Shown here piece by piece: positions 2,311 through 62,149 of a stretch of DNA of 64,000 bases; the stretch's first letter is position 1, and each line of letters opens with the position of its first letter. Where the stretch lies: sequence record LC819005.1; one strand, 5' to 3'. A model generated the notes under the pieces. The model did no database searches. It was not told the DNA's origin and saw nothing but the letters and a program-made list of their open reading frames with translations. The position numbers and the translations under genes were made by a program.

Positions 2311-2360
2311 ATAAAAAAGGCATAAAGGCCGTGGCAGGCGACCGAAGTCGCCCACCACAG
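2311..2360 (-). terminator. Intrinsic terminator hairpin followed by a TTTATGCC late-promoter-like motif
   Basis: GC hairpin GTGG..GGCGACCGAAGTCGCC..CCAC at 2331-2358, then a T-rich tract on the minus strand containing TATG. Confidence 0.7.
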
Positions 2361-2364
2361 ACCC

Positions 2365-2577
2365 TTAAACTTCCATGCCTTCTGAACGCATACTGTCTTC
2401 CACTTGCCAGCCGAGATTCCAGGCGGTTGCCTTGGCTTCCCAGTCAGTGCAGGTTTCTCCTGTAGCGGCCGGCATCATTTCCGGCTTGTAGTAAGGGTTG
2501 TCAATGAAACCACGTCCGAGCGCTCGTGCATTGGCGCCTTGCTTCTGGATATCGGGATGCTGCATAACCTCACTCAT
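2365..2577 (-). CDS. CrpP-related (Rmf/CrpP-like) small protein
   Basis: Pattern G-A-x-A...(D/N)PY...MP-x-x-TGE...W..K..AW..GW matches the CrpP-related family; 70 aa; overlaps the upstream stop. Confidence 0.75.
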   Translation of the reverse strand: MSEVMQHPDIQKQGANARALGRGFIDNPYYKPEMMPAATGETCTDWEAKATAWNLGWQVEDSMRSEGMEV

Positions 2578-3034
2578 TCGGTAATCGTTTCGGCAGCAGT
2601 AGTTGCCACCGGTCCTTGAGATAAACTAGAAGTGCCCGAAGCTTGGCCTGGAATCGGCCGTGTCGGAAGCGCTTCCGGATGTAGTGCGGGTGAACACGCA
2701 CGCTCTCCAGATTCATCCACCGAAGAATGTCAACGAGATCGTCCTGAGGATCTTCCGAACCACCGTTGGTGAATTTGATACGCAGACCGTACAGCAAATC
2801 ATCGCCCGCACATGAATAACGGATCTGTAGCCGCGCCTCGTTCGTCTGAGTGTCGTATTCGACGAGCGCTACGTGGATAAAGTCCTTGTCCACTGGGTAG
2901 ATGTAGAAGTAGTCTTTGTTGACGTCGTACTGTTGGAACTCCTTGCGTAAGTGATGGAGTACAACCGGATGGCTGATCCGGAAGAAGCCTTTCTCGCGTA
3001 GAATCGCGCGAACCTTTTCAATCGTGAGAGACAT
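2570..3034 (-). CDS. Hypothetical protein (154 aa)
   Basis: Protein-like ORF co-oriented with neighbours, downstream of a TATG motif. Confidence 0.75.
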   Translation of the reverse strand: MSLTIEKVRAILREKGFFRISHPVVLHHLRKEFQQYDVNKDYFYIYPVDKDFIHVALVEYDTQTNEARLQIRYSCAGDDLLYGLRIKFTNGGSEDPQDDLVDILRWMNLESVRVHPHYIRKRFRHGRFQAKLRALLVYLKDRWQLLLPKRLPNE

Positions 3035-3055
3035 GGGTTAGTCCTTTATTAACGG

Positions 3056-3430
3056 CGGCATAAACCAGAGACAAACCCCGATGCACGCGAGGTCTATCCC
3101 TGGTTCAGAGGCTCCACAAGTACCACTCAACAATCGTTGTCGATAAATCTGTCATGCGCCCGCTTCGGAGAGTGCGAGACTCCGCGCTGGCTTTACATGG
3201 ATCTACCTAATCCCACACGGGACTTTTCCCTACGTGCTTCACCGCTCGTAGAGGTCAGCAGAGTATCTGAACGATCGTTAGTCCTAGGCTCCACCACAGA
3301 GCCGCTCGCTGCTATCTAAAGGAAGAAAACTTCACAGCGGGATCGAGGATGACCAGTTCCTCGGTCTTTGCATCAAATAGTATCTCGCCGTAAAAAATAA
3401 CCACGAGATACTATCCTTGCTCATTGCTAC
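3056..3430 (-). ncRNA. Candidate structured non-coding RNA (~370 nt), family unassigned
   Basis: No credible minus-strand ORF; many nested stems by eye; promoter-like CACATTAC at 3435-3442 and a terminal hairpin at 3064-3104. Confidence 0.4.
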
Positions 3431-3460
3431 TAGGGTAATGTGTTGCTGAAAAGAACTACA

Positions 3461-5284
3461 TCAGAGCGAAGCGATCGATTGATCCACGTACTTGAACGCC
3501 GAGTACATCACGTCGCTCGCACGGTCTTCAATCCGCGAGAAGATCGTGGCGGACGTATCCTCGTGTGCATAGATCATGCTGATCGCGTTCTGCTGCTCTT
3601 CGCTCATCATGTCCCACAGGTGACGCACCGGACGATCCCACTCGAACCAGGCGTCGACTTCGCCCAGTTCGTCGTCATTCAGCGCACCCTTCAACATCGG
3701 GAAACTGACGTCGACTTCGATATAGTCAAACAGCACCTTGATGATGTCTTGCAGCTGTTTGACATCACGCGCCTTGGCAACGGCAACCGGAATCGGCTTG
3801 AGATCGTAGTCGATGTCCAGGAATACGTGGCCGCGATGATTCACCTGCTTCGGATGTACCGGGTTACCGCCAATCCAGCCATCGTACTTGCCCGCTTCCT
3901 TCTCCATGAACTCCACGAAGCCATTGCTGTCACGTACTCGTTCGGCATTGGCAACCAGTGGCTTCATAGCGTCGTCTAGAACCTCCTGGGGCAGATTGCC
4001 TTCGCGATCCATGGCGGCAGTCACAGTGCGCTCGAACTTCTGCACCAGTGGGCCAGCAAGCCGCGCAAAGGCCTTGGCGTTCTTCGCCATTCGCTGGTTC
4101 ACACCCGAGGCTTCCTTGAACATCTTGGCAAGCGCCGAAGCGATCTCTTCTGGCCGTGGACTATGTCCGTTGATCGAGAGCTTCAGCCCGGAATCAGGCG
4201 TGAAGTCCTTCATCGTCAACTGGAATTGACTCGGATCAGCCATGAACTTGCTGCAGCGTTTCCAGGCCGACTGGATGTCAAAGCGTTCAATCGGTTGTGC
4301 CGTAGGGCCGGTCTTTACCTTGCTGCGGAAGTAGTCTAGGACACCTTCGTTTGCTGGTTGACGCGCCACGAGCTTCTTGTCGAACATCGCGATGTACATA
4401 CCGCAAATGATCGGACCGAGGTCGGTAGTGATCATTTGCGCCAGATCGAATACGTTGTCGTCGTTCTGGCTGGAGAACAATTGACGGAAGATCTCGTCGC
4501 CATTCTTCAGATTGTCGTACTCGATAGCGTCATCTAGACTGTCCCAGTACGGAATGTAGTTATCGCGCGCCAGCTTCTCAGCTTTCTGGGCAACTCCCAG
4601 CAACACACGAATTGCGTCGGCGAATTGCGTCGCTGTCGATTGAGTCGGTGCTTCGAATTCACCAGAGGTTTCGGTACGTGCAAACAACGAGAAAGAACTG
4701 TCCTTCGGCTCGCTGAAATTCACCGGCCACGTATTCTTCTTGCTGTCGAAACCCAATGCCGGGAATGGACGCTTGTACTTCTTACGGGCTCGGTCGACGG
4801 CCGACTCTTTCAGTTGATCTTCGTGCTTGTCCCAAAAACTATCGAGCTCCGCATTGTTCTTGATCGCTTCGGCCTGCTTGCACAGACGACGGCGCAGGTC
4901 TGTGTGAGGGCGCTCCGAGTGTGCGATATCTTCAACGACCGAGAGCATTGCTTCGGCGGCGCGCACGATATCCTGCGGTCGCTTGAGCGCTTGACCGTTC
5001 ACGTTGGCATACTTCAGGCCAGGTACGTGGATATTCTCAGCGCTCTCTTCCAGATTGTTCTTGACCCAGCCCGGATTCTCGTAAGTGTTCTTGAGATCGT
5101 GGTCCAGGTCTTTGGCCACCAGGTCGATTTCATGCCAATCTTTGCCGTGGATCAGGGCCGCGCGTTCTTGTTGTCTGCTCTTATGGGCAAAGAGCTTCTT
5201 GATCGTGTCAACGAAACCTTCGCAGGCGGGTCCGTACTCGCCGAGGTCGACTTCGTGATCTTCTCGCAGTTGCAGAATTTTCAT
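3461..5284 (-). CDS. Probable virion head/inner-body-type protein with cleavable propeptide (607 aa)
   Basis: ATG at 5284 sits just after the upstream stop; N-terminal PACE/GFVDTIKKLF resembles the (S/A/G)-x-E prohead protease site followed by an amphipathic helix, as in phiKZ head proteins. Confidence 0.55.
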   Translation of the reverse strand: MKILQLREDHEVDLGEYGPACEGFVDTIKKLFAHKSRQQERAALIHGKDWHEIDLVAKDLDHDLKNTYENPGWVKNNLEESAENIHVPGLKYANVNGQALKRPQDIVRAAEAMLSVVEDIAHSERPHTDLRRRLCKQAEAIKNNAELDSFWDKHEDQLKESAVDRARKKYKRPFPALGFDSKKNTWPVNFSEPKDSSFSLFARTETSGEFEAPTQSTATQFADAIRVLLGVAQKAEKLARDNYIPYWDSLDDAIEYDNLKNGDEIFRQLFSSQNDDNVFDLAQMITTDLGPIICGMYIAMFDKKLVARQPANEGVLDYFRSKVKTGPTAQPIERFDIQSAWKRCSKFMADPSQFQLTMKDFTPDSGLKLSINGHSPRPEEIASALAKMFKEASGVNQRMAKNAKAFARLAGPLVQKFERTVTAAMDREGNLPQEVLDDAMKPLVANAERVRDSNGFVEFMEKEAGKYDGWIGGNPVHPKQVNHRGHVFLDIDYDLKPIPVAVAKARDVKQLQDIIKVLFDYIEVDVSFPMLKGALNDDELGEVDAWFEWDRPVRHLWDMMSEEQQNAISMIYAHEDTSATIFSRIEDRASDVMYSAFKYVDQSIASL

Positions 5285-5688: not shown

Positions 5689-5756
5689 AGCGAAATGAGG
5701 GTCCGTGAGGGAAACATAAAATTACCCCACACTGCTACGACAAAAAAAATAAAAGG

Positions 5757-5800
5757 CGACATAGAGCGAGCGGGGCTTTCGCCTCGCTCGCCTTATGCCG
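5757..5800. terminator. Bidirectional hairpin terminator flanked by TATG motifs
   Basis: GACATA-GAGCGAGCGGGGCTTTCGCCTCGCTC-GCCTTATGCCG; A-tract upstream. Confidence 0.7.
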
Positions 5801-6181
5801 TCAGAAAAACAAAGCGCTTTCACGATTCACAGTCACCCGTTCATAGCGTCGCTCGTAGAACACGTCGTAAATGCCACGGTCCATGAGGTATGCGTTGAAA
5901 TCTCTTGCGAGATCTTCGAACACCTTGGCGATGTACTTTCTCGTAAAGGTGTCGTGGATATGTAACTCGTCGAGCAGGTCGTCACTGGGGAAGACCGATT
6001 CTTCGTTATCGAAGTACGTCAATTGCCGCCAGTGCTCGAACATCCCCTCAACTATGCGGTTGAAGCATGATGCACTGATCGGCTTGGGCAGAATAATCCG
6101 CTCGATCGCGAGCTTGCACTTCCGGATAGGTATATGCAGGCCGAGCGACAGCGGTGTGGCGGATGGTTGATAGGTTAGCAT
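5801..6181 (-). CDS. Hypothetical protein (~126 aa; start uncertain, alternative 6043)
   Basis: ORF track; member of a dense minus-strand cluster. Confidence 0.55.
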   Translation of the reverse strand: MLTYQPSATPLSLGLHIPIRKCKLAIERIILPKPISASCFNRIVEGMFEHWRQLTYFDNEESVFPSDDLLDELHIHDTFTRKYIAKVFEDLARDFNAYLMDRGIYDVFYERRYERVTVNRESALFF

Positions 6182-6728
6182 CGAAGACAAGTTTTGACAT
6201 GAACAAGTATCTGCCTTGGTGCAGGCAGTAGAACTCGTAAGGGAAGAGCTCTGCACTTGATTTCGTGTGAGTGTCAAAATATGCCAACAGGTGGTCGCAG
6301 ATACACTGAATGCCCTTGATCAGTGCATTGACCTCCCGGGTGCCGCTTTCAAGCGTGAAGGAGGTGTCGTCCAACGTCTGGGCGACCAGTTCCATACGGA
6401 ACGCTTCACGGTTCAGATCGTAATTGCTGCGCGAGGAGATCAACTCCAGCGCTTTCTGAATACACAACTCGTGGGGCGCTGCCAGTACACTCAACGTGTT
6501 GGTGTACATGTTCAGCCGCTGCAAGGGTTCCAGTAGATCCAAACTCACAACGTTTGGGAGGACTGGGTTCGGGCAGTACCCGCCTACGAGGTCATCGCTT
6601 GCATTCAAGAGTGACTGCATGTCAAACGCCTCTTCTCGGTAATCATAGACTCCGGAGATAAATAACTCGGCCGTCAAAAGAGTGGAATTCATAGGGAAAC
6701 TTCCCGTCTGCGTCGTAACGACCTCCAT
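6048..6728 (-). CDS. Hypothetical protein with FPYEF motif (start 6728 or 6692)
   Basis: ORF track; C-terminal LFPYEFYCLHQGRYLF is similar to the neighbouring gene. Confidence 0.65.
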   Translation of the reverse strand: MEVVTTQTGSFPMNSTLLTAELFISGVYDYREEAFDMQSLLNASDDLVGGYCPNPVLPNVVSLDLLEPLQRLNMYTNTLSVLAAPHELCIQKALELISSRSNYDLNREAFRMELVAQTLDDTSFTLESGTREVNALIKGIQCICDHLLAYFDTHTKSSAELFPYEFYCLHQGRYLFMSKLVFDANLSTIRHTAVARPAYTYPEVQARDRADYSAQADQCIMLQPHS

Positions 6729-7035: not shown

Positions 7036-7467
7036 CTACTTGAGAAGGAACGACCCTGAATCAAACCGGTTGTTCACCGCAATGCACTTGACGTGCTGCA
7101 ACCCGGTATCCTCACCAAGGCGCTTAAGCGAAGTCTTAGCGAATCGGTAGATGTCAAAGGTCCGCCGATAGAACTCGCGCTGTTCACGCTGATACATGTC
7201 CATCGTGGCTGTGTTCTCATCCAGCCGAATGCGGTAATAACTCTCAAACATCTCACCGACTTGCTCCTGGAAGCTCGTCAGATCGCCGTCCAGGACGTTC
7301 TGAAGTGCTACCCCGAAGACTGTACTCGCTCCACCATCAAAGCGACTGAAGAAGTCCCGTTGGTCACGCAGCGTGTAACGCCCCGCGTCACCGACCTGAT
7401 TCGGGTAATTGACGACAATGGCGTTATGGGTAACCATGAATGTGGACCTCAAGAATGTTATCGGCAT
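7036..7467 (-). CDS. Hypothetical protein (143 aa)
   Basis: ORF track; operon-like spacing. Confidence 0.65.
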   Translation of the reverse strand: MPITFLRSTFMVTHNAIVVNYPNQVGDAGRYTLRDQRDFFSRFDGGASTVFGVALQNVLDGDLTSFQEQVGEMFESYYRIRLDENTATMDMYQREQREFYRRTFDIYRFAKTSLKRLGEDTGLQHVKCIAVNNRFDSGSFLLK

Positions 7468-7516
7468 AAAGAGGAGGCTCGGAGTAAAATCACTCCGAGC
7501 GATCCTGGATTGTTGC

Positions 7517-13025: not shown

Positions 13026-13086
13026 CAAAAAAAAAGAAGCAACATAGAAGCGGAGTGGGCGCAAGCCCACTCCGCTCTTTATGCCG
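13026..13086. terminator. Bidirectional terminator with flanking TATG motifs
   Basis: A-tract, AACATAG, 12-bp stem AGCGGAGTGGGC-GCAA-GCCCACTCCGCT, then CTTTATGCCG; lies between convergent genes. Confidence 0.85.
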
Positions 13087-19654: not shown

Positions 19655-19693
19655 CGACATAGAGGCCGGGGTTTCCCCCGGCCTTTTATGCCG
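19655..19693. terminator. Bidirectional terminator with flanking TATG motifs
   Basis: CGACATAG-AGGCCGGGG-TTTC-CCCCGGCCT-TTTATGCCG between convergent genes. Confidence 0.85.
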
Positions 19694-22200: not shown

Positions 22201-22244
22201 ACGGCATAAAAAGCGAGGGGATTACTCCCCTCGCCCTTATGTCG
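22201..22244. terminator. Hairpin terminator flanked by TATG motifs
   Basis: CGGCATAAAAA-GCGAGGGG-ATTACT-CCCCTCGC-CCTTATGTCG. Confidence 0.8.
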
Positions 22245-38480: not shown

Positions 38481-38533
38481 ACGGCATAAGAGGCCACTGG
38501 AAGCCTTCAGAGGGCCTCCAGTGGCTTTATGAC
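38481..38533. terminator. Hairpin terminator flanked by TATG motifs
   Basis: CGGCATAAG-AGGCCACTGGA...TCCAGTGGCT-TTATGAC. Confidence 0.75.
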
Positions 38534-62047: not shown

Positions 62048-62149
62048 AGGCGCATAAAAGGTATTATTTGAAGACTACACACGGGACAGTTCTGAAACTG
62101 CTCTCCTGTAGGTAATATGTGCTCAGCAGATTATACGTTCGAGGCGAAC

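Follow-up and report, generated by a model that had tools for sequence, protein, structure and literature searches.

The phiKZ-like jumbo phages transcribe their genomes with two RNA polymerases of their own, and to our knowledge very little has been established about RNA-based regulation in these nucleus-forming phages. In phiKZ, ONT-cappable-seq located 133 termination sites, with 61 predicted intrinsic terminators that have a hairpin followed by TTATKYYGT in common (consensus ...GGBYTTATKYYGT), and placed 42 terminators within 5' UTRs, where they give rise to short abundant RNAs as well as read-through transcripts (PMC10914365). The virion RNA polymerase recognises the early promoters of the phiKZ group, AT-rich words of about 10 nt with their centre near -10, and the late-promoter word of phiKZ is TATG, the G being +1 (PMC7598289). 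Published early consensuses are TATATTAC for phiKZ, ...TTTRARR.BTATATTAC... for 201phi2-1 and WTTTYAAACCTACATTATY for EL (PMC7058600).

A gene-free gap and its relatives

We analysed a window of 64,000 nt from record LC819005.1, the genome of Ralstonia phage FLC1-1B (a phiKZ-like jumbo phage, 290 kb), in which window and record coordinates coincide. All genes from gp15 to gp1 lie on the minus strand. Between gp4 (3461-5284, minus strand) and gp3 (2570..3034, minus strand; 154 aa, phrog_31353) the record leaves a gap of 426 nt (3035-3460) without annotation. We conclude that this gap encodes a folded non-coding RNA of about 365 nt on the minus strand, with predicted ends at ~3426 and ~3058; the features of the RNA given below are all on that strand. 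The 426-nt query matched FLC1-1B with 100% identity at the same coordinates and FLC4-3B with 99.5%, and the genome papers of FLC1-1B and RP12/RP31 mention no RNA, promoter or terminator at the gp4/gp3 gap. Two genes nearby have Pfam identities: gp1 (PF20286), the divergent DNA polymerase of family B found in phiKZ-like phages, and gp5 (PF20287), the SH3 partner of this polymerase. The FLC4-3B genome is otherwise 99% identical to that of FLC1-1B, but its unannotated gp6/gp5 gap (L004:2381-3150, record 5689-6458) measures 770 nt against 112 nt, an insertion of ~660 bp.

A tblastn search with gp4 recovered RP12 and RP31 at 52-54% amino acid identity, each with a 437-nt gap at the equivalent site, and the gp4 search of IMG/VR found one 283-kb contig at 74%. 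Protein searches and contig look-ups added five further metagenomic lineages (gp4 37-73%), and a search with a signature DNA pattern two further contigs; the comparison set comprises 12 sequences in eight lineages. Nucleotide identity of the RNA across these eight is 54-80%, and the flanking gp4 proteins are 37-74% identical. Looser searches were unproductive: a DNA pattern built on a 16-mer around the H9 loop and a loose H4 pattern in viral contigs gave only chance matches, the loose-pattern matches in metagenomes were mostly chance, and seven of seven in bacterial genomes were negative by covariance model.

The order of RNA, gp3 homologue and DNA polymerase gene is kept in all lineages, and gp3 is always the gene that follows the RNA. 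The first-pass annotation had described a stand-alone non-coding RNA or a leader beside the DNA polymerase operon, and the position directly before gp3 and the polymerase gene agrees with it throughout. The 5' neighbour differs: it may be a full-length gp4 or, in L144, a gp4 together with a half-length paralogue; L155 has just the half-length form, and L145 an HNH endonuclease. The upstream junction of the RNA is a rearrangement hot spot (L145:4302-4919; L144:2280-3203; L155:5892-6824). The free-standing HNH endonuclease gene of L145 is inserted directly 5' of the RNA, and the paralogue in L144 and L155, of ~310 aa, corresponds to the C-terminal half of gp4 and replaces the full-length protein in L155. 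Neither flanking protein offers a hint of function, as gp4 has no Pfam, PDB-sequence, Atlas or Foldseek match (model pLDDT 79) and gp3 has no fold match in the PDB, with only insignificant RAD52-like rows (AlphaFold model pLDDT 79). Two features recur in the homologues of gp3, a C-terminal helix (Y.RKRF.HGR..K.RA) that is basic and invariant, and the motif CAGDDLL.GL.

With a covariance model of domain B, the 3' domain of the RNA (158 positions, 37 pairs), every member scored 94-146 bits, and a single copy was found both in the complete FLC1-1B genome and in the complete RP12 genome. Three more distant phages, FLC9 of Burkholderia, RSF1 of Ralstonia and PhiPA3 of Pseudomonas, were negative both with this model and with a full-length nhmmer profile. 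The SH3 and polymerase genes of RSF1 and PhiPA3 are direct neighbours, and the gp4-RNA-gp3 block is therefore a clade-specific insertion at the SH3/polymerase junction. The RNA represents a new structured family that is restricted to Ripduovirus-like jumbo phages. Non-coding or leader RNAs of phages that lie between a promoter and a terminator are a known kind; the fold of this one is new.

At the equivalent junction between the SH3 gene and the DNA polymerase gene, FLC9 has an unannotated gap of 536 nt (L162:6456-6991; LC667451.1 2709-3244), which folds with a z score of -4.25 and ends at its 3' side in a hairpin+TTTTATGCCG terminator. Similarity between this gap and the FLC1-1B RNA was undetectable, and it may hold an independent, analogous leader RNA.

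Start and stop signals

A phiKZ-type early promoter-like motif lies at the 5' end of the RNA (3434..3452, TTTTCAGCAA-CACATTACC), with its core CACATTAC at 3435-3442. The full site reads TTTTCAGCAACACATTACC, follows the pattern TTTYAR..CAYATTACC and resembles the published early promoter consensuses of the phiKZ group (PMC7058600), in agreement with the promoter-like end proposed earlier. CATATTAC occurs four times in the window against 0.57 expected, and all six CAYATTAC sites of the window are on the minus strand. The five within the annotation examined are intergenic, either 46-113 nt before start codons or, for the RNA's own site, 400 nt before gp3; the sixth is at 62112. Transcription of the RNA would start at about 3424-3428. 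A scan for sigma-70 promoters and classic terminators was uninformative, since the phage uses its own signals.

Among the eight lineages, seven carry the promoter motif 137-177 nt upstream of the H4 loop, and it is absent from the L145/L148 lineage. Wherever present, it is the last early-type promoter before the polymerase gene, with the sole exception of a looser TATATCAC match ~1.3 kb downstream in L005 and L139. In three lineages (RP12, L002:6355-6420; L146:5320-5385; L155:6835-6905) an extra hairpin followed by TTTTATG(TT/CC)GC stands directly before the RNA body, and its 5' arm shares bases with the early-promoter word CATATTACC. Transcripts arriving from gp4 would meet a complete terminator at this hairpin, while those begun at the embedded promoter would have an incomplete 5' arm and so read past it; FLC1-1B appears to have lost the 5' arm.

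The 3' end is formed by a phiKZ-type intrinsic terminator (3057..3105), an 18-bp hairpin (3063-3105) with the tail TTTATGCCG, in which TTATGCC occupies 3057-3063. On the gene strand the hairpin is followed by TTTATGCCGCC, and hairpin+TTATGCCG fits the terminator motif mapped in phiKZ (PMC10914365), as would be expected from the terminator-like end of the first-pass annotation. Ten of 17 pairs of the stem show compensatory changes. The start of gp3 lies 20-45 nt past the terminator end in all lineages, and the ribosome-binding site of gp3 is ~10 nt 5' of its ATG. Given the promoter and terminator motif matches, the locus is an element with the family's own start and stop signals and no gene enclosed. 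The tail also contains TATG, and since this is the late-promoter word of phiKZ, gp3 could also be transcribed from there.

TTATGCC is found 15 times in the window against 4.1 expected, in 13 of the 15 cases directly after a GC hairpin. Other sites include 2319-2325(-), 5793-5799(+), 13079-13085(+), 19686-19692(+), 22203-22209(-) and 38483-38489(-), and one long hairpin+TTATGCC terminator separates gp2 from the DNA polymerase gene. At 7463-7469(-), the ATG of one hairpin+TTATGCC element doubles as the annotated start codon of gp9 (7036-7467).

The location also raises the question of an origin-associated transcript, one that primes or opens a replication origin in the manner of ColE1 RNA II or the T4 and T7 origin transcripts. 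The RNA does adjoin replication genes, a promoter leads into a structured RNA whose hairpin H1 has an A/T-rich tip, and the literature consulted on this point contains no description of replication origins of phiKZ-like phages. We nevertheless consider such a role very improbable, as GC skew does not change near 3 kb, the flanking genes are all co-oriented, the RNA ends at a strong terminator and not at an unwinding region, and the relatives RSF1 and PhiPA3 do without the element altogether.

A conserved fold

The minus strand of the 426-nt gap folds at -162.3 kcal/mol (z -5.62), and none of 100 shuffles was as good; for the predicted transcript (3058-3426) the score is -5.39, for the plus strand of the gap -2.87, and for the orthologues in RP12 and L145 -5.0 and -3.5, respectively. 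The highly structured RNA suggested by the first-pass annotation thus folds better than shuffled controls, and its fold is kept with compensatory changes in eight lineages. Standard pairs fill 91% of cells in the sense orientation and 84% in the antisense, the difference being made by G-U pairs. The RNA can be assigned to the minus strand because the sense folds better and G-U pairs turn into A-C on the opposite strand. Its lack of a credible reading frame, also claimed before, holds in all members: every frame contains several stops on both strands in eight of eight lineages, and no small open reading frame is conserved across them.

RNAalifold, applied to five and then to eight sequences, predicted many pairs with compensatory changes. 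We curated a structure of 70 pairs on the 8-sequence full-length alignment (A3), in which 85.2% of cells contain standard pairs; when the partners were slid by 1-3 columns as a control, only 40-53% did. Both sides change in 35 of the 70 pairs, compared with 17.1±3.0 in shuffles, none of 500 of which reached the same number, a sign of covariation. Helix P-c is one column off in the 70-pair count, and the figure given for it below is taken from the covariance-model alignment; P-a is paired in 96% of cells in A3 but in 56% in the MAFFT alignments A4 and A5, where its 3' strand is misaligned. Domain B, counted separately on the covariance-model alignment, agrees with the full-length result.

The many inverted repeats of the region, and a plus strand that is also somewhat better than shuffles (z -2.9), could reflect an element that acts as DNA, such as cruciforms or inverted repeats bound by protein, or the decayed remnant of a gene. 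Nested long-range helices over 140 nt, and the loss of G-U pairs to A-C on the other strand, do not fit the first of these; the second is ruled out by the compensatory changes across eight lineages and the invariant loops, with no open frame in any member. Overall we give explanations of this type hardly any weight.

The 5' domain consists of four hairpins. H1 (3370..3420) is long and imperfect, with an A/U-rich tip and a GCA/UGC closure, and appears in the single-sequence folds of every lineage; its tip sequence varies between U-rich and A-rich, and an invariant (A/G)UGC marks its 3' base. H2 (3341..3366) shows both-side changes in 5 of 8 pairs and has a loop, UGGUC (3351-3355), that is invariant in the eight lineages. 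H3 (3307..3339), a stem with a large pyrimidine-rich loop, has both-side changes in all five pairs, and its loop motif UUUCCUUUA (3317-3324) is likewise invariant in all eight. In H4 (3287..3303) 100% of cells are paired and 2 of 6 pairs are compensatory; its invariant loop UGUGGUG (3292-3298) is the strongest sequence signature of the family. The same word as DNA, TGTGGTG, in the gp2-polymerase terminator is FLC-specific and was set aside as a chance occurrence.

Domain B (3128..3280) is enclosed by P-a and P-b, within which lie P-c, P-d, a variable hairpin P-e, and H9. P-a joins 3270-3280 (UAACGAUCGUU) with 3128-3138 (AACGAUUGUUG) over ~140 nt, has compensatory changes in 6 of 11 pairs and is recovered in the minimum free energy fold of each lineage alone. 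P-b (3264-3267 with 3142-3145) is paired in 96% of cells, P-c (UCUGCU with AGGUAGA) in 97%, and P-d (3228-3253) in 93%, the last with 3 of 9 pairs compensatory. The junction UAGGUAGAUCC (3199..3209), invariant in the eight lineages, provides the 3' strand of P-c and the linker to H9. The inner stem-loop of H9 (3167..3183; 92.5% paired, 3 of 4 stem pairs compensatory) has a 9-nt loop (3171-3179) containing the invariant UCGCAC, and in FLC the stem is lengthened to 3153-3199. Between P-a and the terminator, UUGUGGAG (3112..3119) is single-stranded and near-invariant in the eight lineages, and a count of UUGUGGAG/TTGTGGWG over the rest of the window gave no enrichment that would point to dispersed binding sites. 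GACU, AGAU and UUGUGGA are further words that are invariant across lineages.

Most of the stems listed by the first-pass annotation are backed by the orthologues: the 11-bp repeat (H1, 11-14 bp), CGAGGA/TCCTCG (H2), CGCTG...CAGCG (H3), GGCTC/GAGCC (H4), CTCTACG/CGTAGGG (P-d) and the terminal hairpin. In GCGC-[GGAG/CTCC]-GCGC the inner GGAG/CTCC survives as H9, whereas the outer GCGC/GCGC is an FLC-specific extension. GGGA-AAAG-TCCC occurs in FLC only, and the alternative pairing AGCAG/CTGCT is FLC-specific too, neither being conserved; GGAT/ATCC and GACAA/TTGTT gave way, through covariation, to the long-range helices P-c and P-a.

GACUA (3279..3283) is a candidate pseudoknot partner of the H2 loop UGGUC. 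It is invariant except for GACUG in RP12, where a U-G pair is still possible, and the position flanking UGGUC/GACUA pairs in 5 of 8 lineages with four pair types (G-C, A-U, U-G and U-A). This pseudoknot probably ties the two domains together. For the H3 loop and the purine-rich linker after P-d, 5 of 8 lineages beat shuffles at <=0.04, the sequences being of low complexity; a second tertiary contact between them is a candidate and only suggestive.

In size and complexity the RNA is similar to known classes that sequence models might miss, such as group I introns, RNase P RNA, riboswitches and GOLLD- or ROOL-like RNAs, and GGGAAAAGUCCC in FLC1-1B superficially resembles the CR-I motif of RNase P. 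The whole window gave no match to Rfam 15 at gathering thresholds. At E<=10 the only match in a 701-nt region was a chance one to mir-1803 on the terminator hairpin, with 16.6 bits against a threshold of 95 bits, and the earlier statement that no family can be assigned stands. A group I intron can be rejected, since gp4 with its own stop and gp3 with its own ribosome-binding site and ATG are separate genes that leave no exons to join, and RF00028 does not match. RNase P RNA was rejected as well: the word like CR-I (GGAAAGUCC) exists only in FLC1-1B and varies in orthologues, and no RNase P model of Rfam matches. ARAGORN predicted no tRNA or tmRNA. A known class in disguise is thus a far-fetched explanation.

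Proposed role and known counterparts

The best reading of the locus, about as apt to be right as wrong, is a long 5' leader with regulated read-through and a stable RNA product. The virion RNA polymerase would start at the early promoter (core 3435-3442), the RNA would fold into a 5' domain of four hairpins (H1-H4) and a 3' domain built as a multi-helix junction closed by a long-range helix, and transcription would end at the phiKZ-type terminator, the hairpin at 3063-3105 plus UUUAUGCCG. Most transcripts would stop there, so that a stable RNA accumulates, while a share set by regulation would continue into gp3, gp2 and the DNA polymerase gene; the conserved fold would bind a putative protein or small molecule. 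We infer the transcript ends, the early timing and the attenuation role from sequence features. A leader is the most likely role because gp3, gp2 and the polymerase gene are preceded by no other early-type promoter and the terminator ends 20-45 nt before gp3; action in cis as leader or attenuator is further favoured by a gp3 linkage that survives upstream rearrangements and by the phiKZ precedent for terminators inside 5' UTRs. The layout of a riboswitch or attenuator is there, in the order promoter motif (7 of 8 lineages), RNA, terminator and gp3.

No antiterminator pairing conserved in all lineages was found among the eight. In 6 of 8 lineages a CCUCU segment 5' of the terminator could form pairs with the purine-rich arm on the 5' side of its hairpin; L141 and L146 lack the segment, and no covariation backs the pairing. 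The terminator stem, at 18 bp, is long, one lineage (L145/L148) does without the early promoter motif, gp3 and the polymerase gene could be transcribed from the TATG of the tail and thus be uncoupled from the RNA, and the fold is more elaborate than in most attenuators and would suit a trans-acting role equally.

A stand-alone early RNA acting in trans, as a ribonucleoprotein scaffold, a decoy for host or phage proteins or a catalytic RNA, is the main competitor; a purely trans-acting role, tentative as it is, would be nearly as likely as the leader. The adjacency to the polymerase would then be incidental, with gp3 and the polymerase gene transcribed from the tail TATG or from other signals. 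A promoter of its own and a strong 18-bp terminator flank the RNA, and several of its loops and junctions (UGGUC, UGUGGUG, UCGCAC, UAGGUAGAUCC and UUUCCUUUA) are invariant while its stems covary. Such a combination is typical of RNAs with tertiary or protein contacts. In phiKZ, TATG with G as +1 is a late promoter (PMC7598289), which could uncouple gp3 from the RNA here, and abundant small non-coding RNAs are expressed (PMC10914365). The strict gp3 linkage in all lineages despite upstream rearrangements is harder to square with action in trans, as is the lack of any further early-type promoter before the polymerase gene. The analysis revealed no target, partner or catalytic motif, and neither gp3 nor gp4 has a fold match. 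gp3 is a possible candidate for a nucleic-acid-binding partner of the RNA.

A bolder reading, which we hold doubtful, assigns the RNA to a new class in nucleus-forming jumbo phages, that of large RNAs which act as sensors or form RNPs. In one version it is an attenuator, whose elaborate pseudoknotted fold would respond to a metabolite or to a protein of phage or host and so time the expression of the DNA polymerase; in the other it is an early RNA that would itself serve host takeover or replication as a catalyst or scaffold. With its length of ~365 nt, its strong covariation, loops that are better conserved than the neighbouring protein sequences and a fixed place directly before the DNA polymerase genes, the RNA is a tangible candidate, open to experiment, for the control of replication genes by RNA or for a functional RNA of a new kind. 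It also offers a clean case of a promoter and terminator pair for phage polymerases that encloses no protein gene. Culturable carriers are FLC1-1B, FLC4-3B, RP12 and RP31, biocontrol agents of a plant pathogen.

With origin and primer transcripts (ColE1 RNA II, T4 oriF/oriG and the T7 primary origin) the RNA shares a structured transcript beside replication functions, but it differs in ending at a strong terminator. GOLLD, ROOL, raiA and OLE are likewise large multi-helix non-coding RNAs, and the FLC1-1B RNA is phage-borne, with invariant loops and covarying stems; no Rfam match links it to these four, and compared with GOLLD and ROOL it is smaller, is not next to tRNAs and keeps a fixed position in one clade of phiKZ-like jumbo phages. 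Attenuating riboswitches and protein-binding leaders also have a conserved folded domain between a promoter and an intrinsic terminator, upstream of the genes that they regulate; the present RNA exceeds nearly all known aptamers in size, and it would be transcribed by multisubunit polymerases of the phage. The 5'-UTR-derived non-coding RNAs of phiKZ, which arise through premature termination (Putzeys et al. 2024, PMC10914365), come from the same phage group and share the layout of a phage promoter, a structured non-coding stretch, a hairpin+TTAT(G/T)YYGT terminator and then a gene, although no sequence relationship to the FLC1-1B RNA was found. They are shorter than 250 nt (71 and 141 nt, for example) and no elaborate conserved fold has been reported for them (PMC10914365), whereas the predicted FLC1-1B RNA extends over ~365 nt and has at least nine covarying helices and a probable pseudoknot.
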